Source: Ginglymostoma cirratum
Lineage: Eukaryota
NCBI GenBank assembly: GCA_024137785.1
Contig: JAHRHZ010000002.1
Span: forward strand, 19,302,685 to 19,366,684
Length of the DNA: 64,000 nt
Direction: 5' to 3'
The translations under genes and the position numbers were made by a program. Below, piece after piece: positions 8,407 through 55,962 of the stretch. Position 1 is the first letter of the stretch. Every line of letters starts with the position of its first letter. A model generated the notes under the pieces. It was given only the letters and a program-made list of their open reading frames with translations, searched no databases and was not told the origin of the DNA.

Positions 8407-8691
8407 CTACAAACACACTGCTGCATACACGATCTGCTCGCCCTTCATTCCGGCAGTCTGTGGGGGACCGAGCCGAGCACCAGCCTCGCTCTGACCTGGT
8501 TGTGGTAAGACCGAGTACACTATCGACGCCTCATTAGTTTTTGGAATTGGCACCGACTCACTCTTTGCTGGGTTTTCACTCTGCACGCTCAACCTCTTTG
8601 TCTCGCTCACAGCCTGATCTGGATCACGGTGGTTGTTTGAGCGGCTGATATTCAACTTCGCATAAATTGTAGCATCGGGCAAGTCTTCATT
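8407..8691 (-). CDS. Gene A exon 5, cytoplasmic tail with three tyrosine motifs
   Basis: Acceptor gttattttcag; NEDLPDATIYAKL...SIVYSVL...QIVYAAVCL-stop; matches the 8407..8682 ORF. Confidence 0.88.
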   Translation of the reverse strand, partial: NEDLPDATIYAKLNISRSNNHRDPDQAVSETKRLSVQSENPAKSESVPIPKTNEASIVYSVLPQPGQSEAGARLGPPQTAGMKGEQIVYAAVCL

Positions 8692-11600
8692 CTGAAAATA
8701 ACCAGATCATTTGTTACAATATTTGTAAATAACGGACGGCAGATTCTCTCGGTGAGGAGATATATAACTAGTTACAGCAGTAGTGCTGATATGTTTAGCC
8801 TTTTGCTGTGGGTTTCGAATGAATGCTTTCTTCGTTATTGTATTGGGCATCTTGTACTTCACGACCCATAACACCGCAGGTACAAACTGGACAGAATTAT
8901 ACCAATGAAACCCCAGGGTGTTTGCGAAATATAGCCTTGATATTATATACCATTATGTAATGTGCTAAAAAAATTCCCTGACTTCATGCAACTGCAGAGA
9001 TTTTCTTCTCGGCTGTCTCTGGTAAATTTTTAAAGCATTTTTACATCAGAAACAGCCCTCCGTTTTCGATGTCACAAACAGCCAGTGAGTAATGGAAATT
9101 TTGCATTCGTTGTGGGACTGAGCAAAAAATTGACCATGAACCCAATTGCTTTGCATTCAGGGTGGAAAATGGGAATTTCATTTCACAAACGATTACATGA
9201 AAGATAGACCGACAGAATGAGTTTGGGAACTACTCGCTCACATTCTAGACCTGTATTTGGTCTAAGCACACAGCACTCAAGTGACAAAGCCAACTGAGTT
9301 TCCACGCTAATCACTTCAAATCAATCATAGTCTGTACGCATTGTCGGGAAGCACCGTCATTTAGTAACAACTGAAGCTAAAAAGTGCTCTGATGGATCAG
9401 AGCATGAGACGTTAACATAGAGCATTGAACAGCACTGCTCGGGAAGAGGCCCTTCAGACCACGATGTTGTGCCGAACATGACGCCAAATTAAACTAATCC
9501 CTTCTGCCTGCCTTGGTCTATGTTCCTCCATTTCTTGCATATCCATGTGCTTATCTGAAAGTCCCTTAAACGCCCCGATCGTATCTGCCTCTACCACCAC
9601 CCCGACAAGGCTTTCCAGACTCTTACCACATTTCTATCTTAAAATAAACCTGCCCTTCACATATTCTTTGAAGTTTCACCTTCTGACTTTACATGCATGC
9701 TCCTTAGTATTAGACATTTCAACTTTGGGTAAAAGATTCTGACTGTCAACCCTACATATGCATCTCTTAATTTTATAGACTTCTATTAAGTCTCCCTTCA
9801 GCCCCCACCGTTCTCGAGAAATTAACCCAGGTTTTTCTAGCCTCTCTTTATAGCTCATACCCTTTAATCCAGGCAGCATCCTGGTAAACTTCTTCTGCAC
9901 CCTCTCCAAAGCCTCGGCATCCTTCCTGTAATGTAGCAACCAGAATTGAACGCGGTACTTCAAGTGTGGCCCAACTAAAGTCTTTTAAAGAAGCAAAAGA
10001 CATCCTGACTCCAGCACTCAATTCCTCGACCGATAAAGGCATGCATGCCATGCGCCTTCCTTACCACCCTGTCTACTTGGCGTGGCCGTTTTCAGGGGTC
10101 GAGTAATCGAATTCGCGTGACACAATGAACAATTTTTAAAAATAACTAGCTTGCAGTGATGTCTCTAACGTAAGGAAAGCTTGAAAGAATAAAAACAAAA
10201 TGACCAGCAGCTGAAAGGAGGAAAAGTCTTCTCTTACGAAAGTAATAAAAAATTGAGAGCAGGGATATTGGGCAGTCTCTAGCAGTTCAAAAACACAATT
10301 TATAGAAGCGATGCGTGGCTGGATGCACTCCAAATTTCATAGATAGAAACATTGGGATGCCAGAGACAATGGTCATCATGTCCTGTTAATAAGAAGTCGC
10401 AATGGATTTGTGCTAGAGAATAAAATTACTCCCTCCCTCTAGGATAAGGACAACCGAGCTATAGAATCGTAGAATCCCCACAATATTGAAGCAGGCATTT
10501 CAGCAAATCGAGCCTTCACCGACCTTCCCAACAGCATCCCACCCCACTCCACTATGTGCCTGCACCCCGCATTTCCAATGCTTGATCCACATAGCCTGCA
10601 AATCCCGGGACACTTTGGGCAATTTAGCGCGGCCAACATACCTAACCGGCACATTTTTGGATGTAGGAGGAAACCGGACCACCCGGAGGAAATCCATGCA
10701 GACAAACCAGATTTGTCATTCTCTAGGCTTCAGTCATATTGAACATTCCAGGATAAAATTTCACTTGTAAGTTAATGCTTCAAAGTTAATGTTTCGTATT
10801 TTCATCTTCATCTGATCTGCTCACCAACCCCCCACCTACCCCGCCACCCCATCCTCACCCCCATAGAAAATGTTACACCAGTACAAACATTTGAATACAA
10901 ACTGTTGAATCATTTACCCACCATTTTGCCTGTGCAATAAACTGCACATCAGACTGACATATCTTCCTAAATATTTTGTTCCTGCTCATATTCAAAGCCT
11001 GGAGTCAAGCAATTAATATTTCTTATTATTAGTTGTCATCCTCATCTTTCGTAGCATGGTGATCACTTATAATGTTAAACTCGCCCCTCATAAGCCTTTC
11101 TCAAAGATAATCACCTAAAATTGCCATCAATCTGAATACAAAGCAAAAGCCGTAATGGGAATATAGTACATACCTCATTTGCAACTTGGTCTCCAGTTCT
11201 GTTACCTATAAAAGTTATTTTTTAATTGGTTAGATATCTTAAAGCAGGAACAAAATTAACAATTGCATAAATGCAGTGCTACCGTCAAGGCATTAGGAAG
11301 AAAGATCTATAACTTATGCATTTCTTAACATCTTGACTGCAGCTGTTCAAGAGGCAGCTTACCACCACCTTCTCAGGGGCACGGAGAGATAGTCAATAAA
11401 TGCTGGCCCAGCTAGTGACATCTGAGGCCCACCAGTGAATAAATTGAAAAAAAAATTATCTTGGAGCTTGGATGTCAAAAAGGTGGCCCATGAGTGCTGG
11501 TCCCTTTAGTGAAGTATTTTCCTTTAAAAAAAAAAGACAAAGCTTACAAGATTCTCTTCTGGAATAGTGATTGCCTAGCCCTGTGATATCTTGAAAAGTG

Positions 11601-14600: not shown

Positions 14601-17600
14601 GGAAATTGGTCTATGTGGTATACTATTTGGCAGGCCGGTGCAGACTCGATAGGTCAAAGGGGCTCTATCTGTACTGTAGAAATTCAATGAATCTAGCCTG
14701 TCATTGTTTATTATCATGCAAGGCGGTAGGAGTACAAGTGTGAGATAACCTCTAATGCAAAATACTTAAAACTAGAAGGCAATAATGAAACTCACCGACT
14801 TTGAAGTTGAGCATTTAAATACACTTTCAATATTCTACAATTTGAGCAATGACGCTTTTAATTTACGAATACTTTACGAATACTTTACGAACATGGCGCG
14901 AAAGTGAGGAATGAATGGATGGTGTAGTAATAATTTTTTGCATTTTTGTCTTTCTGATACAAGGATAAGTATGATAATTTCCTAATTTCTTGACATTTAC
15001 TATTCCTTTATAGGGCTCTCCCCCTCGCTTTCCTTTCAAAAGTCTACTCTCGTCAACAAATAAATTGGCTAATTACGCCAACAGTTCAGAGAAAATTTGC
15101 AAGTATGGTACCAAAAATATGCAGGTATACACATCAACACAAGCTGGATATCTTCTCTCTTGAGAAAAGAAGGTTGAAGCATAACCTAATTGGATTCTAT
15201 AAAATTATGAAAGCTTTGTTACAATAGATACAAGGGAGATTTTCCTCTAATGGGCAAAAGCTTAGATAGAAGCCACCAATACAAGCTCACTATCAAGCAT
15301 TTCAATGGGAAATCAAGAAGAAACTTCTTCCCATAAACTATGACAAGAACGTGAAACTCATTACTACAGTATGAAGAGAATAACAGAGTCGTAATTAAAA
15401 GTTAACTGGAAATTCACATAAGGACATACAAAAAGTTTACTAGATTTATTAGTTGAGACGATAATAGGGAGAGGTCCAAGAAGAGCGTAAACACTGTGTA
15501 GTAACTCATTCTATGTTATTTTGTACTTGAGTTCAGTAATTACCTGGAGGCCTGCTACGGTGCAGTGTGGAAATTATTTTGACTAAGATTATAACGACCA
15601 GCACCACCACCACCACTGAAAATATCAGGAGATTGGTGTTCCACTGAATTGGAGATGGTGTTTCTTCAGAATCAATATGAGCTGCGAATAGAGGGGAGAA
15701 AAACTATTTGTTTCGTTATGTCTTTGCATTTCTCTTCGCGCTTTTGGTAATGGCTATATTGGTTTCATGCTTAACTTAAAAGCTGCAAATGAGTAGCAAT
15801 GTTGCAGTATGGTGCAGCAGGGCACCTAGTTGGTGAGCAGTAAAGCAAAAAAAAAACTATGTATCTTTTTATAACCCTCCTCTGTGCTTTTCATTGCTGT
15901 TATTCTTAGTCGTATGTTTGAATTAAGGTAAACAAGAGCGTTACAAAGATCATTTGTACAAAATAAGCACAAATAAGATCAGCAGACAAAGCCACAATAA
16001 AGAGTCAGTTGAATGACTGCAAGCCTGTAGATTCCAGCAGAGGTGGTTTAGTGGACGTTGGGGTAGAAGGTGGAGGAGGGGCAGGTGTAGATTGTAGCTA
16101 TTGGGGGAGGTGAAATGTTGTACACTGTTCTGTGTATCTCTTCCTTTTTCTTACTTGTGACCTATTTCAGAACAAAATGTTCATCATATAAATTGCTTAC
16201 TTTCCATTAATTTGAACTTCTTAGGAAAGCTATATGGATTCAAAATGGACTCAAAAATGCTGCTAATCTGAATCTAATATACAATAATTCATCGTAAATT
16301 AAATATCAGTAACTATGTATCACCCATACTCCACTCGATTAAATGATCAATTAGACTCAGACAATTTTGCAACTAATTTACCCATTCCAGTTTAGGTAAT
16401 CTTTATGCTACTTTGTGAAGATGATAGAGATAGCTGACTGTATTGAAGCTATCTTAAGTTGCAAAACATGTAGAACAAACGAGCCAGTTATTATTCAATT
16501 GTGATTATAACAACCAGCACCAGGGCCACCACTGAAAATACAAGCAGATTTGGAGTTGGCATTTCTCCAGAATCAATATGAGCTGCAAATACGGGGGAGA
16601 AAAACCATCCATTTCATTATGTCTTTCCTTTTCTCTTTGTGTTTTTGGTAGTGGCTATATTGGGTTCACACTTAATTTAAAAGCTGCAAATGAGTAACGA
16701 AGTTGCAGTACAACACCACAGAGCACCTGGATGGTGAATGGATGAAATGAAAAAATCTAATTATTTTTTCATCATCCTCTTCTGTGATTCTCATTGCTGC
16801 TATCTCCATTTATCTCCAGCGCTATGTGTTTCAGTCTAATTTGTAATAACATGCTTCAATTATTTATTGATTGATTCTCAGTAATGAGTTTGAATCTAAT
16901 CAAACTAATTCCTTCAAGTTATGAGTCGCACATCTACCGTGAACAATTCCATTACTCGTGAGATTCATGCACTCATCGCATTAGTTTGATTGCACATTGA
17001 TCACAAAGAAACAACCCTCTAGAGAGCGTCGATGGATCAGTTCAAAGATTTGATGTTTTGCAAAACTCAATCTAAGTTTTCGTGACATAAAAAAATACTC
17101 ATAGAAAAAGATAGTTCCATAAATTTCGCACACTCTGTGGTCGAAGAACGCAGCACATCAGTGCAAAGGACAAAGCTGTTGCATTGTCAATCATCTGCAG
17201 CCAGGTGACATTCAATTTTCCTTCTTGACTGTTTCCAGAACACTGTATCATTGCGGATTCAAGTGCTAAACCAATTCAATTCACCGCACGTCATGCAATC
17301 AGGAACTAAATGCACTGAATACGGCCACAAAAGACCCAAATCTGTTAACCAGTTCTGTCTTTAGCTATTTAGTTCAGCTACATCATTGATATATAATTAA
17401 TAAACTTAACATGACTCTTTCATGAGAAAAGCAAAACTCAATCCAGCCAATTACTGGACACCAGACTTGTCCCAAATATCAAATAAGTAATGGGGGTTTC
17501 CTCACCAGTGGTATACAATGACAAGTGATCCATAATACCCAACGACATTTTTGCTTTCTGTCAGGGCTAAACTTTTATTGACCTGTTAACACTTTGCTCT

Positions 17601-23600: not shown

Positions 23601-26600
23601 CCTGCACTTCGTCCAAACTGACCCAGTATATCCATTGCTCCCAATGCGATCTCCTCGATATCAGGGAGACCAAACATAGACTTGGGAGCCAGTTTACAGA
23701 TTATCTGTGCTCTGCACGCACAAACCAATCCCACCTTCTGGTTGCGATCCATTTTAATTCCCCCTCCCACTCTCCTGGAAACATGTCCATCCTTGGCCTC
23801 CTTCACTGTCAGAGTGAAGCCAAATGTAAACTGGAGGAATAACGCACCGTATTTCGTTTTGGGAGCTTACAGCCCAAAGGCCTCAATATTGACTTCACCA
23901 GCTTCAAAATCCCTCCAACCCCCCCCACCCCTATCCCCTGTCCAGCCTTCCTCCACACAACCCTGACCTGATCTAACCTGCCTGTCTTCCTATTCACCTA
24001 TCCGATCCGCCCTTCCCTGTGACCAATCACAATAACCTCCTACCTGCGTCCACCGATCATCATCCCACCTACCCTTCTCCCAGCCCTAACTCCTCCATTT
24101 ATTTACTTCTGGGCTCCCCTCCCCCTCGGTCAGAATCGTTGACTTTCCTGCTCCTCCGATGCTGTCTGACCTGCTGTGCTTTTCCAGCCTCTCGTTAATT
24201 GATTCACGCTCTAAGTTCAACTGCCATACTCCTTGCCTTGAAATGAACACACTTCAGCCCATTAGTACCGTCGCGTTCATATACCTGTCTCTGCCTGTCC
24301 TTTCTTTCTGATTTACTGGTTCCACTATGTACCTTCCTCTCAATCCCTGCACTTGCTGACCTGCTGCTTTGGTTCCCAGCCCCCTGCCACTCGAGTTTAA
24401 ACCCTTCCAGGGAGCACTAGCGAACCTCCCTGCGAGGCTATTGGCTCCCCTCTGGTTTAGGTGCAACTCATCCCTCTTTTACAGATCACGACAGTTCCGG
24501 AAGAGGTCCCAATGATCCAAAGAACGTGAAACTTTCGTCCCTACACCAGTTCCTGAGGCACGCATTCATCTATCTTTCGATTTCTTGCCTCAATAGCACG
24601 TGGCGCGGGCGGTAACCCAGAGATTACTGCCCTCGAGGTCTTGCTTTTCAGCCTCTCTCCTAACTCCTACTCACTCCGCAGCTCCTCATCCCTCTTTCTA
24701 CCTATGTCGTTGGTACCGGTGTGCACCACGACCTCTGGTGCTCAACCTTCCCAGTTTCCATTTATCTACATTTTGGGGAGGTGAAGGTTGGGGGTCGGAG
24801 GGGGTGCGAAAGTGGATAGTGAAAGTGGTAAACGTACCATTTACTGTGACTCTTACGCCTTTTCCAGTCCCGCATCCACCATGGATAGCATGGACCTCGC
24901 AGTAATACGTTCCTGTATCGTTCAGTTTCATCTCGATTATTGATATCGATGCTATTTTCAATTCGCGGAAGGACGATGCATCGGTGCGCCGGACGCGGCC
25001 GATATATCCTGCGCAGTTGTTGCAAACTTCATACATCTTGTAATCTTTGTACCACATGTAGGAACCTACCAGTTTGCTTTCTGAATGGGTGGTATCCACA
25101 CTAAAATTGCAGTGTAGATTCAACGTGTCACCCTTGCTAACGTTAATCGAGACCGGAGTTTGGTTGACTGTGACTTTGGAGTCAGTGATTCCTGTAAAAA
25201 CAAAAGGACCTCAAGGATAACCACGCCGTTCTACATTGTGTGCCTTTCAATAGCAGCAGATAGCCTCAAACATAAAATATTCTTCCCTGAATAATTACGG
25301 TTATTGAAGACAGGAGCCTTTCGCCAATAATAAATAACAGATTTCACGCTGCGCCATCCTGTGCTTCGACCATTATCCGAGCCGTTTGATTTGCCGGCAG
25401 ACATTGCCCGAACTACTGACAGTATCCAGTATTTTCAAACTTTCGTTCAGATTTACACTCCATCGTGCACTTTGTTTTCTGCCTTCACTCTGCTCCATAA
25501 AGATACTGGGAAATGGGGTTCCAACTGTTTCAGAGATAGTAGGAACTGCAGATGCTGGAGAGCCTGAGATAACAAGGTGTGGAGCTGGATGAACACAGCA
25601 GGCCAAGCAGCAATCAGAGGAGCAGGAAAGCTGACGTTTCGGGCCTAGACACTTCTTCAGAAAATGTTCATCCAGTTCTACACCTTGTTATCTCAGATTC
25701 TCCAGCATCTGTAGTTCCTATTATCGCTGAAAGGTTTTTGGGTTTGGCGGCCAAATGCAATTCCACTTTTTGCTCCGGCCAACGAGTTGAAAATGTACCC
25801 GGGACAGTTAAGGGTCAAATTATCATTTAATTAAATATTCCTGCTCGAGGACAGGGGCAGTTTGAAGTGTCATCTCAATCGCAAATATAAATATAAGCAA
25901 CTAGACAGTTAACTTTTCAATCATTAAAATGGTCGGCTATTTTGCAGTTGAGACGCAATTCATTTTCAGTTACCAGAAGACAACCGCTTAATATAGGTGA
26001 AGAAGTTGATGGGGACCTAGTACTTTGTTCTCTTGAATGTCATCACTGTTTCCACTGTTCATAGAGTGATGGAGCTATCCATGAGTCTGGGAAACCATTC
26101 CAAATTCTTGGCAATAGAATGCACGCCTTTTGTAAAACTAACTTTACCCGAGGGTCACCGGGGACTTAAAAGTATTGTTAACAAGGCCCAGCTCGACTTC
26201 CACTAGGACAGAACGTGAAAGGCTTTTTGAGACCTGTTACCACATGAAGCACCCTGGGCTTGTAAAACGACGTACCTCGATGTTCCATTCACGAACTTGA
26301 ACACAAGTGACGCAGCTCTCGGAACTTTCCGATTCTGTTGTCTATTTGAAGAATATGGACAGGTTTGCTTGGAGATTTTCTTTTATCAGCGATCAATATT
26401 AGCCATATCTAATGGTATTTATATAGTGTCTTTATGTTAAGAAACCTCAAACGTGGCGTCAAAGTAGGCTCAGATTAACTGCTAAAGAATCGATCCCCTA
26501 ATTGAGTAGCTGTGTAATTTGTCTCAGTGTCGGTATATTTTATTGTGGATACAAATAAATATGTCGGCTGCATTTTGCAATACGGTATTAAGGATTTGCT

Positions 26601-27936: not shown

Positions 27937-28036
27937 AACAAAAACGAAGTTGCTGGAAAAGCTCAGCAGGTCTGGCAGCATCTGTGAAGGAGAAAACAGA
28001 GTTAACACTTCGGGTCCGGCGACCCTTCCTCAGAAC
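27937..28036 (-). mobile_element. Penelope terminal fragment (family 2) with a hammerhead-like core
   Basis: Same sequence as 61698-61798 and 62240-62341; CTGAGGA-agggtc...gaccc-GAA. Confidence 0.7.
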
Positions 28037-38702: not shown

Positions 38703-39172
38703 AGGGCAGCATGGTGCCTCAGTGGTTAGCACTGCTACCTCACAATGCCGGGGGCGCGGGTTAGATTCTGCCCTCAGGAAACTGTGTGGAGTTTGTAGTT
38801 GAGACAGTAGGAACTGCCGTTCCTGGAGAATCTGAGATAACAAGGTGCAGAGCTGGATGAACACAGCAGGCTAAGGGTCTCGACCCGAAACGTCAGTTTT
38901 TCCTGCTCCTCTGACGCTGCTTAGCCTGCTGTGTTCATCCAGCTCTACACCTTGTTATCTTGGAGTTTATAGGTTTTCCCTTTGTCTGTGTGGGTTTAGT
39001 CCCACAATCCAAAGATGTGTAGGTTAGATGGTTTGGCCATGCTAAGCTTCCTATAGAGTCCAAGAAGGAGCAGGCTAGATGGTTTAGCTGTGGGAACTGG
39101 TGGGTTAAAGGAATGGTGTAGAATGGAGGGCTGGTGTGGACTCGATGCTTTCACACTGTAGTGATTCTATCA
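38703..39172 (+). mobile_element. HE1/V-SINE interrupted by a fold-back Penelope-terminus insertion (~38800-38960)
   Basis: SINE head, then gagataacaaggtgcagagctggatgaacacagcagg...cctgctgtgttcatccagctctacaccttgttatct; tggagttt flanks both sides. Confidence 0.75.
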
Positions 39173-40384
39173 TCACTCTTGCTGGGAACACAAGCAAAGG
39201 CCCTTCTTGCTTAGCGGTGCTTTTCTGGGACATGTAGTGCTTGGCTGTAAAGGCGCCCCAGCCAGCCTACAGGAGGCAACATTCAGAGATATCTGGCCTC
39301 TTTGGACAGCGAGCAGGCTGCGGCAATAGCAGCCATCTCTCTTCTCCATTGGAAAATAGACCCCACTGGCCTTTAAATGCGACAAGATTGCATTAAACAT
39401 TTTGGAACGTGCTGTGGAAACTTTCTATCCTGCCTCAATTGGAAAATCTTTCGGAGGAAGCAATGTGTATTTTCTTTGACTCTACATTACCTTCACCCCA
39501 CTCCACCCAATCACTTCTACCTCCACATGGGAGGTAAAATCATCTTATAACATACAAATCAAAGAAGTCATGATAGACATTTGTAATACACTGTTCAGCA
39601 CTAAGTGAAGGACAATGCCCAATTCTAGGTTGGGCACTTTAAGAAGATTAGCAAGGCCTTAGGGAGGGAACGTGGAGGAGATGGAATTGGAGACAGGGAT
39701 GAGAGGTCTCAGTTATGCAGAGCCCGGAGAAGCTGGGTTTCTTTGCCTTATCGCAGCAAAATTTAAGAAGAAATTTAATCACGTTGTTCAAAATCATGGA
39801 TGGTTTCGAAAACTTAATCAGGAAAAAAATATTTTCAGTAGCAGATTTTAACAAGGCAAAAACCAGAGAATGCCATCTTTCAGTGATATGCAACATCGCC
39901 AGAAGCAACATGAGAAATCATCTCATCACAAGCCAAGTTTTATGATCATGAATATTGGGTGCTATGCTAGGATTTTCCGAAGTAAAGCACTCGGGAACAT
40001 ATATAATACCCTAGGTGAGGTCTAACAACTGTCATATACAAGTTCAGCAAAACTTCCAGGTTTTTGTACTCTATGCCCCTCTGAATAAAGCCAAGAATGC
40101 TGCATACTCATTTGGTGCTCTCTCCACCTGTCCGTGCACATATACATGCAAGTCTCTTTGCTCCTTCTTATAGAGTTATACTTTTATTTTTATATTGTCA
40201 CTGCATGTTCTTTCTACTGAAATGTATCATCTCACGCTTCACTACACTGAAATTCATTAGCTACCTTCCACCTATTTCCATCAACTTGTCAGTTGTACAT
40301 TTAAGGTTCTACACTATCCTCCCAGATTTAATCTTTAGGACTATTATTGATATGGGAGCACTGGAAGCGGATTGGATTATAGCA

Positions 40385-40742
40385 TGACATAGAGTCGTAC
40401 AGCACGGAAACAGACTCGTCCATACTTACCACGTTTCCCAAACTAAACCAGTCCCATTTGCCTGCTTTTATCCCATATCTCTCTAATCCTTTCCTATTCA
40501 TGTACCTATCCAAATGTCTTTTAAATTTTGTAACTGTACCCGCATCTACCATTTCCTCAGGCAGTTCATTTCACACACGAACCACCTACTGTGTGAAAAT
40601 GTTGCCCCTCGGGTTCCTTTAAATTTTTCTCCTTCCACCTTAACAATATGTCCTGTAATTTTGAACTCCCCAACCTTGGAAAAAGACCTTTGCTAGTTCC
40701 CTTATCTATGCCACTCATGATTTTATAGACCTCTGTAAGATT
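40385..40742 (-). mobile_element. CR1 LINE 3' end
   Basis: ORF VDAGTVTKFKRHLDRYMNRKGLERYG; catagagt tail. Confidence 0.85.
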
Positions 40743-43029
40743 ACCAAGAAAGCAAGTATGTTTTCATTTCTAGATGACCACACACTTTAACACTTTGATT
40801 TCTGATGAAGGGTTTAGGCCCGAAACGTCAAGTTTTCCTGCTCCTATGACGCTGCTTGACCTGCTGTGTTCATCCAGCCCCATGCTTGTTATCTCGAATT
40901 CTCCAGCATCTGCAGTACCTTTTATCTCTCACACACTTTAATCTTCAAGTTTCTTTACGTATGACTTCCTTGTTAGTAATTTTGAACATGTTCTGGGAGA
41001 TTTCACTTCTCTGTCTACTAAAGTGCATAGGATTCTTAACATGGATGCAATGCTTCCTGTTTCCACAAAGGAGTATCTTTGTCAACTTCAAACTGGTAAA
41101 CATTTACTGATTAAATTTCTTCACACACTCACAAGTATTCGGTTATGGCTGGGTGGGTTGCAAAAGCGCCTCTAAGTCTGATGGTTCTGGGTGCATTGTG
41201 CTACTCCTGAGACTTGAAATTGCTCAGTGTTGCCCTATTGGATACATTGGACATTCCCTTTGGACACTGGATATTCCCTTTGGAATTATACCTTAATCTG
41301 CTGCTCAATTTGACCTTTCATATAGGCATAAATATCCATGAATATGTTTTCGAAGAAGAGCGAAGACTTTCTCCCTCACGTCCTGGCCTGGCCTGTTTTC
41401 ACTATCTACCACAACCCCCCACCCGCAACCACCACCACCAAAAATACTAATCTGGCACTTTATCACATTGATGTGTGTGTGTGTGTGTGTGTTTATGTTG
41501 AAGGCTGGGGGATAGGGGTGGCTCATTGTTTACGCAATTTCCCTGCAAAGGTTGCTGAATCACAAAAACAAACCATAAAATGGTGTACACTTACTTAAAT
41601 GAACTGTCAAGGTTAACCTCATTTTACAAATTGGACATTGCACTTCTGACAAGGCTCATCCAATTTCCCCTGAATATTTCACAGGTCAGTCAACCAAAAG
41701 AATTAAAGTGGTGTGGGAAGAAACCTTTTCATACCGTGTGTGGCTTGAGTCTTGTTTACACTGCCTGGAAATGTGATGGGAGTAAATTCAACCAAAGCGT
41801 TCAAGGGGTCTTTTTGATGGTTATATCAACAGAAATAATGTGCAATGTTATTTGAAAGGGTGGTACTAAGTTTTGGTTCTCATCTGAAGAATTAAGGAAG
41901 AAAGACCATGGACAGATTGGCCTCCTTCTGCACTCGAACAGCCATCTTCTGGAGGCACATGTTGGACCAGGTAAGAATGGCGGAATGTTTAGTGTACCAT
42001 TGATTCACTATTGCGACTGGTGTTATCATTTTTTTTGGTTGGATTTAAAAGTCATAAATTAATGGAGGAATTTGGACCCTGGGACCCTGTGCATTAGTGC
42101 ACTGACTTTAGAATTGCACCTAACGCTTGTGGTGATCCAAGCAGAGTGAATATGTTTGTGAAAGAATATGTTCCCAAGTTGACTTGCTCTTTACGAAGGC
42201 CCTTCTTGAACAACTAATATTGAAAACCCGCACATGGGTTTCAATACCTCTGTGCAGCGGAACTACATTAAAGTGCACATTGTCTTTGTTGTTTTGTCAT
42301 GACCAAGCAAAAGAGGATCCTCATAAACAGCAACAAAGTGGGGCTAAAATCGTCCCATTAAAGTGGCAGCAACTTTTCACTCTGACGCGATGAGCATGTT
42401 AGCGGCGTTTGTGTCACGGTAGCACTATTGGGCCTGGGATCACAAAGCCGCCTGCCGCACCTGGCTGACGAAGTTACTGTGAAATGTCTATATTAACCTA
42501 AACCGTTGCCAATATTTCGCCACTGAAATGTTTTAACTAAATTGATTTTATATTGATTCCCGGCGATCCATGATCCTGATTCTTATACCACGATCTCTCT
42601 CTTCGTAACAAGTTCCCCATTCTTGTGCGTACTGAACTCAGAGGTTGACATCCAACCCTCTCTAGTCCGGATTATTGCTGTTGAAAGCAAGTTTGTGTCG
42701 AATACCTTGGGAACTGACATTTATGTTTTGTTTTCTGTTATTCTGTTGCCTCTGCCTTCTCTTCATCCGGAAATACAGCTTTGAAAATCCCCCAAGACCG
42801 ATCCTCCAAATCGCTAAAATTTGCCTAATTTGCCCTTCCAATATTTCAACAATTGTTGGTGTTCCACATTGTTTACCCAATGGTTGCAAAGGTTGCTGAA
42901 TAGCCACACCTTGTAAAATCAAATGGCAAAGGTTGTGTACACTTGCCTGAATGTACTGTCAACGCTAACCTCACTGCTAACGCCAAGCTGTCGCAATTCT
43001 GTATAACGCCTTTCTTTACAAGCACTGCG

Positions 43030-43200
43030 GGGGTTGTCAGTTAGCTCAGTTGGCTGGACGGGTGATTTGCAACCAGTAGTTACAGCGTGAGTTCAATTCC
43101 TTCTCCAAGCTCACTTTACCATGAAGACCCCACTTTTTCAACGTCACCTCTGGCGTGAGTCCAGGTGACTATCAGTCATCTCTCTCTCTCTCTAATAAGA
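43030..43200 (+). mobile_element. tRNA-derived SINE (third family); reverse copies at ~43410-43500 and ~44600-44712
   Basis: A-box ttagctcagttgg and B-box gagttcaattcc; not a complete cloverleaf. Confidence 0.6.
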
Positions 43201-43887
43201 GTTCGGGGCTACAGAAACTTTCTGCTTCTTTTTGAATGTTTTTAAGATTTATTTTCAATACCTCCCGTTTGATTTTCACTTCCCCCTTTCAAAGCTAGAA
43301 GGTCACTCTGGTGGTCAGAAACAATCTAACCGAACGTTCATCGAAGATAGGCTTTTCATCTCATTTTATTACTTTGAACAAATTGAAGATTCTGATAAGG
43401 TAAAAGGTAAAGTCTCCATTGTCCTGCGAGAGAAAGAGAGAGGGCTGGTGGTGGTTTATCCTGAGGGACAACACAACTCAGGCGGTGGGGTAAGAGTGAG
43501 ACTCTTCTTCTTGGAGGAGGAAAGGCAGATAGAAGAATTGATTGAAGTATTTAAAATCATGAGACGTTGGACTGAGTAAATAGGGAGAAAACGTTCCCTA
43601 TTTTCACGTGGAAAGATGGAGAACAAGAAAGCAAGATTAGGCCCGAAACGTCAAGTTTTCCTGCTCCTATGATGCTGCTTGACCTGCTGTGTTCATCCAG
43701 CCCCATGCTTGTTATCTAAGATTTAAAGTAAGTCGTAAAAGAAGCAAAACTGTTACATGGAAAATTGTTTTCATGCAGCGAGTAGTTAGGGTCGACAATG
43801 AATTATCTGAGAATGTAATGGAGTGCAATTGGAGCATAAAAGGGACCTGATTGGGCTGGAGTTATTTTAATCGATCTGTTTAAAGAT

Positions 43888-44515
43888 GTTAGGTAGGCTT
43901 GCCTTTATTGGACAGTGCATTGAATCTTGGTGTTGGGAGGTCATATTGCGGCTGTACAGGACATTGGTTAGGTCGTTATTGGAATACAGCGTACGGTTCT
44001 GGTCTCCCTGCTATAGGAAAAATGTTGTGAATCTTGAAAGGGTTCAGAAAAGATTTACAAGGATGTTGCCAAGGCTGGAGGGTTTGAGCTATTGGGGGAA
44101 GGGGAATAGACTGGGGCTTTCTTCCCTGGAGCATGGAGACTGAGGGGTGACCTTATAGAGGGCTTGTAAAATCATGAGGTACACGGATAGGGTAAATAGA
44201 CAAGGTCTTTTCCCAGGGGATGGGTGAGTCCAAAAGCAGAGGGCATAGGTTTAAAGTGAGAATGGAAATATTTAAAAGAGACCTAAAGGGCAGCTTTTTT
44301 CAATCTGGAGGTGGTGTGTGTATGAAATGAGCTGCCAGAGGAAGTGGTGCAGGCTGGTACAATAACGACATTTAAATGCACTTTTGAATATGAACCGTTT
44401 AGAGGGATATGCGCCAAAAGCTGGCAAATGGAATTATATTCAATTAGGATATCTGGTCGGCATGGACGAGTTGGACCGAAGGGTCTATTTCCGTGCTGTG
44501 TACCTCTATGACTAC
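43888..44515 (+). mobile_element. CR1 LINE 3' fragment
   Basis: LRLYRTLVRSLLEYSVRFWSPCYRKNVVNLERVQKRFTRMLP; ctatgact tail. Confidence 0.9.
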
Positions 44516-44995
44516 GTTATTGTACACCTCTGGAGCAGGTGGGACTTGCTCGGTCTCCTTCTTCGGAGGTAGGGACGCTACCACTAAAGTCCCCCCTGAT
44601 TGAGAGTCCTTCATCGTGACCTCAGCCAGGGTGAATCGAATTGAACCCACGCTGTTGGCGTCACTCTTCATCGCAAACCCAGGCATCCAAGCTAACTGAG
44701 CTCACCAGCCCCCTCAATGGAGTCAACACCTGCTGGAATGTACGAACTGTTAAAATTAACTTTAACTGATTTATTAACGCTCTCAAAGTATTCAATGATG
44801 CCTGTATTGTATTCAAACCCGATTCTTTCCTCACTGCTTTTAAAATATCGCTGGCATCACATTCGGTGGGCTGTTAGGGATGAAACCAAACGCTGTTTGT
44901 TTTTCTCCGTTCGCGTCAACACTAGCGTTACACGTCACTCTGCTTCCCCGTAGGTCACAGGCGAGTTCTTGTCACTGTGCAAAGCAAGAATCGAG

Positions 44996-45053
44996 ATGCA
45001 AACCGTTCAAATGCGGATGTTCCTGAATTTAATGACAGCTCTTTTGCACACCG
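44996..45053 (+). CDS. Gene B exon 1, leader MQTVQMRMFLNLMTALLHT(D)
   Basis: gagATG, strong donor G|gtgagt, phase 1, in frame with V exon; exact start Met uncertain (several in-frame ATGs). Confidence 0.65.
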
Positions 45054-48000: not shown

Positions 48001-51000
48001 AGCTGTTATGACATGAGTGGAGAGATAATCAGACCTCATTATGAAACCTTGTTAGGGAGATCATATCCTTATTTTTGTAGTTGGTTAACACTGTGGTTTC
48101 TCACTGAAACTTATTGACATGCATCTGCATGTACTATTTAAAACAGAACAACTTCTTTTACACAAATTGAACAATAAATATAACTAGCTAGGGAGATCTT
48201 AATGCAAATATCAAAACAAGAATTCAACCTGTTTTCCAACACCATTGTTGCAAAGATTCAATCCCAGAGAACTGTCATTCCTGCCTCAGATTTTCAATCC
48301 TTACTTGATTCACAGCAAATGGGGAAATGTAAATTGCTCTCTTTGGCAGGAAGAATAAAAAGGTAGTGTACTATTAAAATAGAAAGAGGTTGCAAAACTC
48401 AGGTTTTCGAGATGATCTTGTCACCCTATGCATGAATTACCAAAAGTTAGTTTGCATACAGCAAGTGATTAGCAAGACAATTGAAATGTTTTTATCAGAA
48501 AGGGAATGAAATATAGGTGTTGTGGAATTTTATGGCAGTTGCAGAGTGTATTGATGAGGCCACATCTGGAGTATTGTTTACATTTTCCATCTTGGCCTGT
48601 GGGCATCAGTGGCAATCTTAGCATTTGCTACCAAACCCAGATTATCTTTGACCTCAGTGGCTTGCTAGGCTATTTCAAAGGCCCTCAAGAGTCAACAAAA
48701 TTGCTTTGGGTCTGGAGTCATGCATGGGCCAGACTTCCTTCCCTAAACCATATTAGTAAGCCAGGATGGGTTTTTACAAACATTGAAGATATTTCCACAG
48801 TCACCATTATTGAAACAAATTACTAATTCCTGGTTTGCTTTTATTAGTAATGTGTTGAACCCATATTCCTAGAGCATTAGCCTGCATCTCTGGGTTGCTA
48901 ATCCAGTTACTTTTGCTTTTATTTAACCTATTATCCTATTCAACCTGTTCAGAGATGTTCCAGGATAAGGATGTTACTACTGCACCACAAGCAGGCCCAA
49001 GCCTGTGAACTTTACATTTAAGTGTAAAGCCTCTCAAACTGCAAATTAACTGATACTTTACACTCAAATATATAGGGCCCCATTTATTCATTACTGGCAC
49101 GTGAGCACCTTTGGCAGAACTGACATGCTTTTCTGGATCTGAATAACACCAGAGAAATTGATGGTGGGCATCATTTTTAATAAGCTACACTCTATCTGGT
49201 GTATGTACCCATAGTGCTGTTTGGGAACAGAGTTCCAGGATTTTGACCCAATCACAGTAGGGAACAGTGATATAGTACCAAGTCAGAATGAAGTGTCTCT
49301 TGGAGGGGAACTCGTGGTGTTCCTAATTCTCTGCAGCCCTTGTCCTCCTATCCGATAGAGATCACAGGTTCAGAAGCTGCTGTTAAAGGAGACTTAATAG
49401 AGTACAGCAGTGTATCTTGTAGATGGTATATTTTACTGCCACTTTGCAATATTGCAGAAAGCCTGAATATTGAAGCTTGGATGGGGTGCCCAAACAATCT
49501 GTCTGCTTTGTCTGGGATGATGTCTATTTCCTGAAATATTGAAACTGCAACTGTTTGAAAAAGTGAGGAACCTTGAATCAGGGTCCTCACTTGCATCCCA
49601 CATATGATGGGAAGCCTTTGGGGAATCCAGAAGTGAAGTTGCTGATTCAAACAGATATGAATGTCGGGAATTCTCCACCTCAGGGAGTCAGTTATTGAAT
49701 ATGAAAGAGGTTGACTGTATTTTGGATACTTTAGGATTGAATATCTTGGGGGATTATTCTGGAGGTATTTGTGAGGTAGGAAATCAGACATTAGTCTAGT
49801 GAATGGTGGAGCAGGCTCCAAGGGCCGGCTCCAGCTACCGATCATGTGTTCTTCTGATGAAATTGTTCCATTGTACTCCAGACAGCGTGCTGATGAGGGA
49901 AGTCAAAGCGTTCCAGTCTCCAGATGTTGTGCGTGCGACAGAAGGAGAATCTGTGCAGCTGAACTGTACCTTTGAAGCACTAGGGCGGGTTGGAAAAATT
50001 GTTTGGAGGCGTGCCTTTGAAAACGCAGAAGTTTCGGACAGGAACCCTTTCTATGAGAGGCGGCTGGAGACATTGGGGTCTGAGTTATTTGCCCAGGGCA
50101 AGACTTCCATTAAAATCAACAGAGTATCGAAAATGGACTCAGATTATTATTACTGCCAGGTGGAATTCATGACAACTGGGAAAAGCAATGGGACCACTAC
50201 ACAACTTGTTGTAACTGATCGTAAGTGAACAGACAAGAGTTGATTTTAAGAGATTTTTTTTCCAGTATCATGACATTTTCATAGCTTATGTTCATGTTAT
50301 ATTCCCAGATAGCATGTGGGCACTGTCAGTTATAGCCTTGCATCTGGATCAGTTTTGGCAAATTGCTTGCAGGAAAAAAGGAAATGCAATAGGAAACATC
50401 TCTTCCTGGTGTGTTGCCCTAACTGACACCAAGGGTAACCATCCCTCACTGCGCTCATTGACCTAGGCTGACTCCTCATCCTTATAACTTGTGACTTTTC
50501 TCTATGGACCAGCCCGTCCCTATCGTTATCCTCTTTGTCATCCTCACTGCCCCTGGGGATTCTCCGTTCCTTCAATTCTGGACTGTTGTGCGATGCCCCA
50601 TTTAAAGAACAAAAAGCAAAGAGCTTTACAGCACAAGAACAGGCCTTTCAATCCACCAAGCTTTGAAATGACACATGATGCCCTTCTAATCTAAAAATAT
50701 TTTGCCTCTATGTAATCGTATCCTTTTATTCCCTGCCTATTCAAGTATCTGTCAAGATGCTCTTGAATGTTGTGATTATCTGTTTCTACCACCTCTTCTG
50801 GCAGTATCCAGGCACTTACTACCCTCTGTAAAACAAAGCACTTACATTTCCGTTAAATTCTCCTCCTTTTACCATAAACCTATGTCCCCCAGTAATTGAC
50901 ATTTCTACCATCTGTCATCTCAACATAGGAGGTACTGTCTTCAACTCCCAAAGCTCTGAGAGCTACTCTCTCAAAAATTTTCCCCCTATCTAGCCCCCAC

Positions 51001-54000
51001 CCCACTCCTTTAATGCCCAGCTCCTGGAGATCTTTTTCCATGTAGGTCTTACAGGAAGTGCTTTATGAGATAGTTGATGCATTGGTTTCAATTTTCCAGA
51101 ATTTCCAAGATTCCAGGTAAGTTCAACTGAATTGGAACAGGAAAAATATAACCCCTTTACTCAAAGAGAGAGAGACTGAGAGAGAGAGAGAGAGAGATAC
51201 AGAAAACATGAAACTATAGGCCAGTTAGTTAACATCTGTCAAAGGAAAGATGGTAAAAGTTATCACTACATATGTTCTGGCAGGACATTTTGAAAAAAAA
51301 TTAAAGTAATAGGGCAGAATTAACATGATTTTGTGAAAGGGAAATCATTTCTCACTGACTTATTGGAGTTACTTGTGCTATCAGTAAAGGGGTACTGGTG
51401 GATTTTCTATGCTTATATTTCCAGGAGGCATTTCAGAAGGTGACACATTGAAGATTATTGTAGAAATGAAAAGCTTGTGGTTTGTAGGTAGCATATTGAC
51501 ATGGATAGGAGATTGGCTAGCTAACAGAAAAGAATAGGCATAAGTGTCATTTTTCAAGGGGCAACAAGTGGTGTGCCTCAGGGATTGGTGCTGCATTCTC
51601 ACATTTTTATAATTTACCTAAGTAACTTGGACGAAGGGACTAATTGTATCTTAATTAAATTGGCTAAAAACACAAAAATAGGTCGGAAAGTAAGTCATGA
51701 AGAGGACATTAGAAGGCTACAAAGTGATTTTAGAGAGAGGTTGTGGTGGTGGGGTGGTGGGGAGCTAGCAGGAGTTGGTGGAGTTTGAAATTTTACCATA
51801 ACCCACCAGTCAGAGATGCAAGTTTTCACTCCATCGAGTTACTGTGTTTGAGATGATGGCATTGAGTGAATGTTACTGGAAATTTTAGTTGCATTTAGTT
51901 TATTTCTTCAGAAACTGGTTGTGGAGAATTCATAGACCCTGCAATGTTTATTGGTGTGCTGTTGTGAGTTACCTCAAGAATGGCTAATGTGATTTTGTAG
52001 GAATACTACATGCACACATCATTCTCCCCGTTACATTTTTCAGAAATGCTTCAGATTGCTATGTAAATTAATAATTGTGAATTAAATGGATCTTTGTTGT
52101 CTTACACCAGAGCATGGAACTGATTGTCCTCAACCAATCATCAGTCAATCATTTTCACTGATGCTGGGGCTCCTGGGGTTATTCACGCTTGCGATTATTG
52201 TCCTATTCTTTCGACTGTACAGTCAACATAAAGGTATGGTGTAAAAGCAAAAACAGTTATGACTTTTCTGTTATCTTTGAGAATGTATTGTAGATTTGTG
52301 GCAAGCTTGGTGCTGATTGTAGGGATTGCATGTGTTATTGCAATTATTATAGCATAAAAGCTGTAATTAGCAAAGAAGTATAAGAGAATGTCTTAAATTT
52401 CACTAATTTTATAAACTTTCCTTTCAATTTAGTTTTATCGAGTCTTAAAGGGTATGTATGGAATGTTTCACTTTTCACTATATAAGTGTCGGCTTTTACA
52501 ACATAGGAACATACAATCCATAATGTCTTTAACTTGATCTTATCTTCCAGGTCACACACAGTCACACAAGTGAAAGGAAATGACTGTACAGATGGTAATG
52601 TTTTATGGCCATTTCTTATAGTCAGACAATTGTATAGTTAAATATTGAACCATGTTTTTTGCTGCTATGATGTACTTCATAAGGGTGTTTAAATACCTAA
52701 TCTATAAATAGTTGTTTGAAAGTATGAGACATCAGCATGAAATTAATTGTCAATAACAAATAATTTATAATCTCACCTCAAAGAACAGCCTTCATTATTC
52801 TTGATCTGCGCAAAGCTAGGACAATAAAATGAACTGCAGTAACACCCTAACCCCTGTCTCAGAATGTTCAGGATGCATGTCCCACTCAAGAAAGTGAAGG
52901 AAAAAAGTCAAGGCTGGCACTTCCTTCAGTGCTGAACTGTTTAAGATACTGACATCCAGACAAGATCTGAAACTAATGCCTAGTTGGCCTGTTCAGTTGG
53001 CATGGTGCTACAATTAGGGAGTTCTTGCTGATATACTCTCCAGGTCTCTAGTTCAGTGATGGCTCACTTGCAGGCATTTCCAAGGTTACCTCATCCTCTG
53101 TAACTGAACTGCAGCATACAGACAATGCTTGTGTCTGCATTTACTCCAGGCCAAAGTCAACATAGGAACGTGCACAACAGCAAGGCCCTTACACTAAACT
53201 TTCATAAGATAAAGTTCATCTACTAACCTGTCCCCTGGTTATCAAAATCCATGACAAGGCCTTCGACAACATAGAGTATCTTCCATACCTTGTGAGCTTA
53301 CTATCAACTAGGTCAGACATTAAAGAGGACAGAGCATCTGGGTAGGATCCACATGTCAGGAGTGTCATCGCTGTTGGTAAGCAGATGTCAAACCTCAGCA
53401 GAAAGAGGTGCAGCTGGCAAACCAGATATCCCACCCTCCGATTTCCAAAACTAGCTACTGTCCCATATGTGATAGAGACTGGTTCATGTTTTCATTACCA
53501 AGAGGTAATTTTTAGCATTACCTAAATGCTAAAAATTTAGGTAATTTTTAACAGGTTTGCTCAACCAGAAGGTACCGCTTAAGAAGAAGAAGAAAAAGAA
53601 TAAGACTAGCCACTTCAGATCCATCGATCACAGTGCTGTTTTTGAGAACTGGCTGTGCACCAATTAGCCACTGTGTTCCATACGCTATGACAGTGACTAC
53701 ACTTCAAAGCACATTGTGATGTTCTGGAATTGTGTTTTCGCACCAAGGTGGTGGAAATCTAGAATCTCATTCCTGCAAAAATCCAGAGAGGGCAATTGAA
53801 AATTCAGAATTGAGATGTACCAGGGTAAAGGGGCTGAATGGTCTCCTTCCTGTTCCAAAACATTGGTGACTTGGAAAAACTATGGGGTTAGTGATTCTCA
53901 ATGGGCACTTGGACACTGCAAAAGGAACGCTGCGTGGAGTCTCAGTTTAAATTCTAAGTAAGAAGAATGCTCACTTGCATGAAGTATGACTGACTGGTGA

Positions 54001-55962
54001 GCAGTCCAAGCACTGTGCCCAGCCAATGTCAGTGCAGTCATGACAGGAATGAAGGAGGGTTTGGGGGGAGGACGTAGAAAGTGCGCTCAGTTGTTGGACG
54101 GCAAAAATAACTCATCTGCATTATGTAACTGTGCATCACTGTTTGTTTCTATTCCAGAGGCAATTGAAGTTCAGGTAAGATTATTTTGAAATTGTTATTT
54201 CAAATAACAATATAGACCTGTATACTAAAACCAGATAATTGGTAGAATTGTCGCCTCTGAGTAGGAAGGCCCTTGACCCAATATTTTTAGCCATCAAACG
54301 GGTGCATTTTACATTAATAAATAATGAGCTTTGCTGGCAAGGCTAGAATTTATTGCCTGTCTCTAAGTGTCTTTGAGAAGGTGGAGCAAAGCATCCTCGA
54401 TTTACTACAATCCATAGAGTGCAAGTATGTCCAAAGGATTGATGATATGGCAGCACTGGAATTTTGACCCAATGAAAGCAAAAGAGTGGTGATATAACTG
54501 CACTAATAGGACGGAGAGTAACTTGGAGGGGAACTTGCGAGTGGTGGTGTTCCCTTGTGTCTGCTGTCCTTTTATTTTTAATGTGCCAGAGATTTGAAAG
54601 ATACTGTTCAAGGGAACTTGATGAGTTGCTGCAGTGCATCTTATAGCTGGTAGACACTGCTGCCACTGTGTCTGTGGTGGAAGGAATGAATGCTTAAGGT
54701 GGTGGATAGTGTGCCAATTGAGCAAGTTGTTTTGTCCTTAATGGTCAAAGTTTTTTTTATTGTTGTTGGAGATTCCCTCAGCCAAGTGGAGAGCATTCCA
54801 TCACACTCCTGACCTATGTCTTGTAGATGGTGGACAGACTTTGGGAAGTCAGGAAGTCAGGAATCACCACAGAATACCCTGCTCTTGCAACCACAATGTT
54901 TATGTAGCTGGCACAGTTTAATTCCTTGCCAATGGCAACTCCTATGGATGTTGATGGCAGAGGATAAAGGACAGTAACAGCACTGAATATGAAGGGGAGA
55001 AGGTTTTATCACCTTTTGTTAGCAATGGTCGTTATGCAATAATTGAGTGGTGCAAACACTGCTTGAGTCTGAATGTTGTCCAGATCTTGTTGAATGTGGA
55101 AGTGGAATGCTTCGATATCTGAGGAGTTTCAAATGGTACTGACCACGATGTAATCAACAGTGAACGTGCCCATTTCTGTCCACTCGTATGAGAATTCGTC
55201 TGTAATGCAGTAGCTTGGGTCCAGGACATTATTTTCAGGAACACATGCAGCAATTCCCTAGGGGTGAGAAGCTAGCTGCAAACAACCATGAACTATGATT
55301 CCAACCAGTGACGAATTTCCCTCCTCAATAGCATGGGTTTCAGTTTTACTGGGGCTCTTTGAGGTTTCTATGAGTGTTTCTAAAGATTGACTGTGCCTGG
55401 AGGCTCATCAACTCAGTCAAAGATGCTCTTTGATCTGTCTGAAACCTGTTGGTCTTCCAGAGCAAGCAGTTGACCTTGACCGAGTGTTGCAGACTGGCCG
55501 ATTCCAAGGTCCAGGGCTACATGCTAAGGGATGCACTAAGGCTTAGGGCAGCTTTGGTCAAAGCACAGTGGGGAAAGACCACCATCGAAGATGTTTCTGC
55601 TGAAGTTAAATAGGGGTACATTCAGTTATCGGATTCCCCAGTGCCTCAGATATATGTAAATGGTATCTTGCATAAGTAAGAAATACCCTAGGTTTTGTTT
55701 GTCCTCCCTACAAAGACTGTACAGAACCAAACTGCTTTAGTGACTATGTATATGTAGAATTTTTAGGAGTAAAGTATATTTTTGAAATTAAAAACAATAT
55801 TATTTTTAGGAAACATCATCTGGTCCCAGGCAAGAGACAGTTCTGCCATTCAAAAGCCAAATCTCCTTACCTGTGTACAGCACGGTAAAAGTACTGAGCA
55901 CTGCTAGAGAAATCACCTCTTCAAACCAACATCTCACCTATGCCCAAGTCACATTTCATTAA
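44996..55962 (+). CDS. NCR3-like: Gene B: NKp30/NCR3- and CD28-like single-IgV inhibitory-type receptor, 229 aa; join(44996-45053, 49882-50220, 52111-52233, 54158-54174, 55810-55962)
   Basis: Five exons, canonical GT-AG, phases 1,1,1,0, 690-nt open frame; V domain strongly NKp30-like (QSPDVVRATEGESVQLNC; EVSDRNPFYERRLETLGSELF); tail has PVYSTV and LTYAQV. Confidence 0.85.
45110..45335. mobile_element. Fold-back Penelope-terminus element (family 2) in gene B intron 1
   Basis: Inverted arms aattgctggaaaagctcggcaggtctg.../...cagacctgctgagcatttccagcaatt, starting about 55 nt after the exon 1 donor. Confidence 0.75.
49882..50220 (+). CDS. Gene B exon 2, IgV (VJ-type) domain
   Basis: Acceptor ttgtactccag, donor C|gtaagt; LNC, IVWRR, DSDYYYC, GKSNGTTTQLVV; 339 nt. 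Confidence 0.95.
51165..51198 (+). repeat. (GA)n microsatellite within a CR1 fragment (~51060-51730)
   Basis: Read directly; flanked by NYRPVS-like and GVPQGLVL CR1 motifs. Confidence 0.85.
52111..52233 (+). CDS. Gene B exon 3, stalk + TM (QHGTDCPQPIISQSFSLMLGLLGLFTLAIIVLFFRLYSQHK)
   Basis: Acceptor ttgtcttacaccag, donor AAG|gtatgg, 123 nt, phase 1-1, uncharged TM, stalk Cys. Confidence 0.88.
54158..54174 (+). CDS. Gene B exon 4, 17-nt micro-exon (EAIEVQ)
   Basis: Strong acceptor gtttgtttctattccag and donor CAG|gtaaga; makes the required phase 1 to 0 change. Confidence 0.75.
55385..55795 (+). mobile_element. L1/Tx1-clade LINE 3' end
   Basis: Decayed frame CAWRLINSVKDAL-SV-NLLVFQ...ECCRLA...WGKTT resembling the Tx1/L1 ORF2 C-terminus; ends in taaagtatatttttgaaattaaaaa. 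Confidence 0.6.
55810..55962 (+). CDS. Gene B exon 5, cytoplasmic tail (ETSSGPRQETVLPFKSQISLPVYSTVKVLSTAREITSSNQHLTYAQVTFH-stop)
   Basis: Acceptor tatttttag, phase 0, canonical ITIM LTYAQV next to the C-terminus. Confidence 0.82.
   Translation, partial: ETSSGPRQETVLPFKSQISLPVYSTVKVLSTAREITSSNQHLTYAQVTFH

Follow-up and report, generated by a model that had tools for sequence, protein, structure and literature searches.

Two receptor genes with single V domains stand head to head in the genome of the nurse shark (Ginglymostoma cirratum), and the locus raises the question of which receptor family they belong to and in which direction they could signal. The window analysed is a stretch of 64,000 nucleotides (nt) of contig JAHRHZ010000002.1 (assembly GCA_024137785.1, positions 19,302,685 to 19,366,684), and all coordinates below refer to it. 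An earlier sequence-only reading took the two genes for inhibitory, checkpoint-like members of the NKp30 (NCR3) lineage, which share a PD-1-like five-exon plan and may retain an ancestral state that connects NKp30 to CD28/CTLA4, PD-1 and CD28H. The analysis described here leads, with a probability of roughly four in five, to a narrower reading: the pair comprises divergently transcribed NCR3 (NKp30)-family receptors with tails of inhibitory type, the plus-strand gene being QTT61903.1 and the minus-strand gene a paralogue that belongs to another NCR3-like lineage, itself elasmobranch-wide.

Gene structures and family assignment

The locus extends from the stop codon of the minus gene at 8407 to the stop codon of the plus gene at 55962. 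The initiation codons are separated by 18.2 kb (26769 on the minus strand versus 44996 or 45011 on the plus strand). Both leader exons and their donors were located, which bears out the claim of two intact genes on opposite strands at this distance. Each product is predicted to be a type I receptor: the signal peptide is followed by a single VJ-type V domain that does not rearrange, a short stalk, a transmembrane (TM) segment with no charge and a tail carrying tyrosine motifs. Single exons or database proteins served as queries in the database searches and in folding; exons were joined only from window sequence, to check the frame, the identity with QTT61903.1 and the similarity to homologues.

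The plus gene has seven coding exons. Exon 1 (44996..45053, plus strand) contains the ATG at 44996, encodes MQTVQMRMFLNLMTALLHT, is identical to the corresponding part of QTT61903.1 and ends in phase 1 at the donor GTGAGT. Exon 2 (49882..50220; 339 nt, phase 1/1) encodes the V-set domain with the J-like segment NGTTTQLVV and passes the curated Pfam V-set cut-off (E = 1.5e-9). Exon 3 (52111..52233; 123 nt, phase 1/1) encodes the TM segment and a stalk with a cysteine (GTDCPQP). Exon 4 (52433..52451) is a 19-nt micro-exon (VLSSLKG, phase 1 to 2) between the splice sites tttag and gtatgt, and it is required for full identity with QTT61903.1. It is followed by exon 5 (52551..52594; 44 nt, SHTVTQVKGNDCTD, phase 2 to 1), the 17-nt micro-exon 6 (54158..54174; EAIEVQ, phase 1 to 0) and exon 7 (55810..55962), which is entered in phase 0, encodes the tail with the motifs PVYSTV and LTYAQV and ends with TAA.

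The joined translation of 250 amino acids (aa), with canonical splice sites throughout, is 100% identical to QTT61903.1 (P0155; UniProt A0A8A9WR28), a nurse-shark protein deposited as 'natural cytotoxicity triggering receptor 3'. The plus gene is thus one of the nurse-shark NCR3 genes already deposited, and it was already annotated with this tail. The family genes MT914154-MT914161 are reportedly associated with Kinlein et al. 2021 (Immunogenetics 73:333). GenBank MT914154-914161 is also the accession range given for the nurse-shark NCR3 genes in a subsequent paper of that group.

Relatives of the plus gene were sought by a length-unrestricted profile search with the V exons, the matches being mapped to the window, and then by a search with the zebra-shark orthologue (XP_048376288), which led to QTT61903.1. 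This orthologue carries about 21 residues between the TM segment and the 17-nt micro-exon which are absent from the earlier five-exon model; exons 4 and 5 were missing from that model. Its open reading frame (ORF) remained open because the two skipped exons amount to 19 + 44 = 63 nt. The 44-nt exon was also considered as a poison exon (entry in phase 1 leads to TGA at 52571), and this was dropped once the 19-nt exon had been found.

The minus gene is described by a model of five exons. Exon 1 (26727..26769, minus strand) begins with the ATG at 26769, encodes the leader MLPNRIIWLLLLCP and exits in phase 1 at the donor GTAAGT; 10 of 14 leader residues match the leader of the bamboo-shark protein P0006 at the expected position. 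Exon 2 (24838..25191; 354 nt, phase 1/1) encodes a VJ-type V-set domain with the J-like segment GTGKGVRVTV and five cysteines, and it passes the curated Pfam cut-off as well (E = 3.6e-6). Exon 3 (15544..15681; 138 nt, phase 1/1) encodes a short stalk without cysteine and the TM segment (LLIFSVVVVVLVVIILVKII), with 75% identity to P0006. Exon 5 (8407..8691), entered in phase 0, encodes the cytoplasmic tail with three tyrosine motifs and ends with TAG.

Between them lies a 32-nt micro-exon (exon 4, 11174..11205; GNRTGDQVANE, phase 1 to 0), placed by homology. It is one of 174 phase-compatible candidates, among which splice scores alone did not single out any. The encoded segment resembles YNGTREQVANE of bamboo shark (XP_043533738, P0006) and DKRTGTQVVSK of horn shark (XP_067865303, P0017, 'NCR3-like'), and its length of 11 residues is also constant in the great white, sawshark and stingray homologues.

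The five exons give an uninterrupted ORF of 283 aa with canonical splice sites, colinear with horn-shark P0017 (48% identity), bamboo-shark P0006 (65%) and RefSeq NCR3-like models of rays. The exon joints are probably correct, judging from the splice consensus and the colinearity with homologues. A second copy of the stalk-TM exon (16494..16640, minus strand) lies in intron 2, with about 85% identity to exon 3 over about 230 nt. It has an intact acceptor and keeps the TM segment, with a 15-nt deletion in the stalk, the stop codons TAA TAA and no donor. It could be a pseudo-exon that is dead or else serve as an alternative terminal exon, which would give a tail-less isoform.

As the sequence-only reading had stated, the V exons, the stalk-TM exons and the phase-0 tail exons with tyrosine motifs are present in both genes, the V domains are very divergent (24-25% identity), and the micro-exons of 17 nt (54158-54174) and 32 nt (11205-11174) exist, both matching homologous proteins. 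The five-exon plan ascribed to both genes has to be abandoned, since the plus gene has seven coding exons and the minus gene five by homology.

Both genes belong, by the similarity of their V domains, to the NCR3/NKp30 family. In a phmmer search against PDB, human NKp30 ranks first among solved relatives for both V exons (E = 4.3e-7 for the minus gene, 3.7e-8 for the plus gene), and with lineage profiles NKp30 is the top single-domain chain (E = 1.7e-17 and 1.9e-16), with SIRP-alpha as the second-best family at about 1e-11. Fold comparison was carried out for the minus V domain: its AlphaFold model (predicted local distance difference test score 80) has NKp30 (3noi) as the top Foldseek match, the predicted fold giving a template-modelling score of 0.72-0.74 at 26-28% identity. 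Look-alikes of the same domain do not discriminate: they comprise V-set clusters of a generic kind (Nectin, CD22, PD-1-family and others), and all of these score 0.94-0.95. In each gene the V domain and the J-like segment are encoded by one exon, the J-like motif of the plus gene being degenerate (GKSNG). NKp30-family membership, already claimed from the letters, is therefore upheld by sequence and profile for both genes and by fold for the minus gene.

Among database proteins the nearest are RefSeq models of sharks and rays, and many of these bear the automatic name 'NCR3-like'. The family name is firmer for the plus gene, a deposited NCR3, than for the minus gene, whose orthologues carry the automatic name 'NCR3-like'.

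Tyrosine-motif tails and the direction of signalling

Mammalian NKp30 signals via a TM arginine and CD3-zeta. The TM cores of both shark genes contain no charged residue, and the cytoplasmic tails comprise 84 and 117 residues. At least one cytoplasmic motif of the form [S/I/V/L]xYxx[I/V/L], the tyrosine-based inhibitory motif of immunoreceptors (ITIM), is present in each gene. In the minus tail these are IVYSVL (8523-8506, minus strand) and IVYAAV (8433-8416), both canonical; they are preceded by TIYAKL (8670-8653), which is similar to the tyrosine-based switch motif of immunoreceptors (ITSM). In the plus tail the ITIM is LTYAQV (55933-55950, plus strand), preceded by the non-canonical motif PVYSTV (55870-55887). 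Of the claim that both tails bear ITIMs, the two minus ITIMs and LTYAQV stood, and PVYSTV did not.

The C-terminal motif of the minus lineage, [I/T/V/F]VY[A/G]x[V/I], occurs in 6 of the 7 full-length members compared, with the nurse-shark model counted (IVYAAV, IVYATV, TVYAAV, AVYGKI, VVYGAV, FVYAAV); it is missing from the great white, whose model stops early. For the middle motif the variants VVYATV, IVYATL, VVYSQL and ILYADV are seen, and for the first VAYADL and VVYSDV, both recurring as [IV]xYxx[LV] in several members of the lineage; the first motif is lost in horn shark and in one stingray. In the plus lineage xYST[V/I] is present in four species, and its horn-shark form, LEYSTI, is canonical. 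Each lineage thus retains at least one tail tyrosine motif, and inhibitory signalling is plausible.

The structures of both genes, the match of the plus product to QTT61903.1, the family membership and the conservation of the motifs are established by the analysis, whereas ligand, cell type, phosphatase recruitment and sign of signalling may be proposed by analogy. The V domain would bind a ligand on the cell surface, probably a B7-family member as in the NKp30-B7H6 pair. Src-family kinases would phosphorylate the tail tyrosines. Phosphorylated ITIM receptors recruit SHP-1, SHP-2 or SHIP, and the shark tails could recruit these SH2-containing phosphatases in the same way, which would dampen the activation of natural killer (NK)-like cells or T cells. 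Both receptors would then be inhibitory counterparts of the activating mammalian NKp30. The plus product may form a dimer because of its stalk cysteine; the minus stalk lacks one.

Several observations weigh against an inhibitory-type pair with an intact minus gene. Horn shark lacks two of the three tyrosines of the minus lineage; LTYAQV is canonical in nurse and zebra shark only; and PVYSTV has proline at position -2. Close to its cytoplasmic end the minus TM segment contains a lysine (LVKIIS, followed by HRSR), which makes pairing with an adaptor possible. P0006 carries 14 additional residues between the micro-exon and the tail, which resemble a read-through of the micro-exon donor. Finally, reads of two raw RNA runs (X8/X9, tissue not recorded) and two contig sets (X1/X2) were mapped on 8200-14199, a span with the TM exon outside it. 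No joints were found there at the exon borders of the minus gene, and depth on its tail and micro-exon was zero in X8/X9.

Alternatively, one or both receptors could be activating or dual, the motifs acting as switches of the ITSM or immunoglobulin tail tyrosine type or as YxxØ endocytosis signals, or the minus TM lysine pairing with an adaptor. TIYAKL fits TxYxx[V/I/L], and ITSMs can give signals of both kinds; PVYSTV departs from the canonical form; YxxØ is a pattern that all the motifs match as well; and the loss of motifs in horn shark shows that they are not strictly required. Conservation of the lysine in LVKIIS would agree with this reading, yet it extends only to nurse, bamboo and horn shark, and the residue is absent from the remaining members of the minus lineage, and its place at the cytoplasmic boundary before HRSR is that of a typical stop-transfer signal. 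Two canonical ITIMs in the minus tail, together with the recurrence of [IV]xYxx[LV] in sharks and rays, make up a classic inhibitory signature, and an activating or dual function is considered rather unlikely. The inhibitory role proposed earlier therefore stands as plausible, the motifs of ITIM/ITSM type being partly conserved across elasmobranchs, with the sign of signalling as its conditional part.

Integrity of the minus gene and ancestry of the pair

The minus gene could also be a silent or decaying unprocessed pseudogene with an open frame that is only apparent, leaving the plus gene as the sole functional member of the pair. The absence of reads on its tail and micro-exon in both RNA runs would agree with this, as would the degenerate TM-exon duplicate within intron 2, the birth-and-death evolution generally known for NK-receptor families and the lack of a protein record. 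No nurse-shark protein for the minus gene was found among deposits at lengths of 162-514 aa or 64-205 aa, the search having covered protein deposits. This negative is credible because the minus product and P0006 have 55 five-residue words in common, and the same search detected a pair with 23. The other nurse-shark NCR3 deposits (QTT61903.1 and QTT61901.1) were present in the database searched.

Against decay stand the five open exons with canonical splice sites and a colinear product of 283 aa. The 65% identity to the bamboo-shark orthologue argues for purifying selection, and so does the conservation of the cysteines, the tryptophan, the YYC framework, the J-like motif and the C-terminal ITIM. 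Exact low-depth contigs of X1/X2 cover 8200-8654 (the last exon and its 3' flank), none lying on unique intron, with the RNA nature of these sets being a guess. The tissue of the RNA runs was not recorded, and receptors of this kind are often confined to rare cells. Decay of the minus gene is accordingly held to be distinctly unlikely, and the gene is well supported as intact by its predicted structure.

Very high contig and read depth of the RNA runs is observed within 9400-13600 on intronic repeats, e.g., at 11600-12000 and 12800-13400. The reads are 95-99% alike, and nearly all of them fit only partly. This depth derives from repeat copies transcribed at other, dispersed sites of the genome and not from this locus.

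In a maximum likelihood tree of V domains the two genes fall into separate, supported lineages. The plus lineage includes zebra shark, bamboo shark, horn shark and sawfish, and is adjoined by a second nurse-shark NCR3, QTT61901.1 (P0069), the tail of which ends in the ITIM-type motif VEYATI. The minus lineage includes bamboo shark, horn shark, great white, sawshark and stingrays. Since the lineages are separate and contain both sharks and rays, the duplication is older than the shark-ray split. A recent inverted duplication, considered as the origin of the pair, is ruled out by these elasmobranch-wide lineages. The two lineages may be adjacent in bamboo shark too, where their LOC and XP numbers follow one another on a single contig.

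Many of the top family hits in rays, sharks and a frog (P0001, P0002, P0003, P0007, P0011 and P0014) are models that contain 2-5 tandem NKp30-like V domains. They are auto-named pIgR-like, turtle-like or NCR3, and could be genuine receptors with several V domains or else arrays of tandem genes fused into one model.

The status of the locus is thus that the family and the plus gene are known, and the minus gene is apparently a new nurse-shark member. A further step may be taken tentatively, though it is less likely than not to be right: the minus gene would be an undescribed member of an NCR3-like lineage, conserved in sharks and rays, which has kept a tail with two to three ITIMs for about the age of the elasmobranchs. 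It would be a dedicated inhibitory NKp30 paralogue, possibly of the NCR3H lineage (Janes et al. 2023) or of a new one, maintained beside a second NCR3 lineage. If this is true, the earliest receptors with NKp30-type recognition were paired or inhibitory, and only the activating form was retained in mammals.

The remaining question concerns the proposed tie with PD-1 and the CD28 family. Chains of PD-1, CD28, CTLA-4, ICOS or TMIGD2 are not found among the 60 listed matches in each of four sequence and profile searches. Fold matches of the minus V domain contain no CD28-family receptor down to rank 50, the entry at rank 38 (7ux5) being the ligand PD-L1. Quiniou et al. 2024 (PMC11599192) describe distinct orthologues of all CD28-family members, including PD-1, in cartilaginous fish; in that paper NKp30 appears only among several VJ-type genes of the immunoglobulin superfamily (IgSF), to which the CD28-family V domains are loosely tied by the GxG motif. 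The CD28 family had therefore already split from these genes, and their placement as intermediates between NKp30 and CD28/PD-1 is not supported.

That the pair preserves an ancestral checkpoint-like state with a PD-1-like five-exon plan is highly improbable: a single V domain with an ITIM/ITSM-type tail, the short exon 4 of a minus gene with probably five coding exons, the plus stalk cysteine (as in CD28-family dimers) and the GxG motif would agree with it, and against these stand the seven coding exons of the plus gene, the lack of CD28-family receptor chains among the listed sequence, profile and fold matches, the separate shark orthologues, and the common occurrence of phase-1 immunoglobulin exons and short cytoplasmic exons in many IgSF receptors. 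Neither the PD-1-like architecture nor the membership in, or ancestral link to, CD28/CTLA4/PD-1/CD28H could thus be retained.

Surrounding sequence and comparison with known receptors

The composition of the window is of vertebrate type and rich in repeats, and within its 64 kb no gene was found besides the NCR3-family pair. A six-frame profile scan of the window for further family exons gave only the degenerate copy of the minus TM exon. The intergenic region (26770..44995), 18.2 kb between the ATGs, contains repeats of interspersed and inverted type; neither another exon of the family nor an ORF recognised by Pfam was found in it. Co-regulation of the two genes from this region, which had been suggested as a possibility, is not supported, the 18.2 kb consisting of interspersed repeats and not of a compact bidirectional promoter.

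Nested inverted repeats are located at 28937-30196; one pair of arms is 257 nt long and 84% complementary, the other 147 nt and 89%. The arms bear similar ORFs on opposite strands and resemble two head-to-head copies of a transposable element. An 81-nt core similar to short interspersed nuclear elements is present in five intergenic copies (29308, 35605, 38879, 40814 and 43637), which are 67-100% identical; related ORF fragments recur elsewhere in the window, e.g., at 25373-25606 and 40856-41110. The blocks 4100-6800 (minus strand) and 20500-24000 are GC-rich with strong GC skew and contain degenerate reverse-transcriptase ORFs (RVT_1, E = 1.7e-5, below the Pfam cut-off) and ORFs related to them. 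These blocks are identified from their sequence as remnants of retroelements of the long interspersed nuclear element type, flanking the minus gene and lying inside it.

Of the NK-cell receptors, only NKp30 can be traced throughout the jawed vertebrates. Shark NCR3 genes, with loci reported as linked to the major histocompatibility complex (MHC), feature in arguments on the origin of NK and antigen receptors near the MHC. For this family the present analysis gives exact genomic structures of two nurse-shark members and corrects the exon count of the plus gene. The head-to-head neighbours are shown to belong to separate, old elasmobranch lineages, and the minus gene is an apparently undeposited member with the clearest inhibitory-type tail. 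No new question is opened by the pair, as databases and literature already include NCR3 families of sharks that have several members and tyrosine-motif tails; its value lies in annotation and in a concrete target for the study of expression and SHP binding.

Several known systems can be compared with the pair. The deposited nurse-shark NCR3 family resembles both genes in its single VJ-type V domain, TM segment and tyrosine-motif tail. The minus gene differs from it by belonging to a separate lineage, the other members of which are automatic RefSeq models only.

PD-1 is similar to the shark genes in having a single V domain, a TM segment and a tail with an ITIM and an ITSM, and its inhibitory signalling is possibly analogous. 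The PD-1/CD28 family differs from them in showing no specific sequence or fold affinity among the listed matches, and the exon plan of the plus gene is different. SIRP-alpha shares a VJ-type V domain and an ITIM-bearing inhibitory tail with the shark genes; however, the SIRP ectodomain has the arrangement V-C1-C1 instead of a single V domain, and the E-value of NKp30 is better than that of SIRP-alpha by 4-6 orders.

Human NKp30 (PDB 3noi, 3pv6 and 6yjp) has, like both shark genes, a VJ-type V domain encoded by one exon. The G strand with its G-x-G motif reads GTGNGTRLVV in human NKp30 versus GTGKGVRVTV and NGTTTQLVV in the shark. Mammalian NKp30 is an activating receptor of four exons with a TM arginine, which pairs it with CD3-zeta, and a short tail free of inhibitory motifs, whereas the shark genes have uncharged TM cores, tails of 84-117 residues with motifs of ITIM/ITSM type, and five or seven coding exons.

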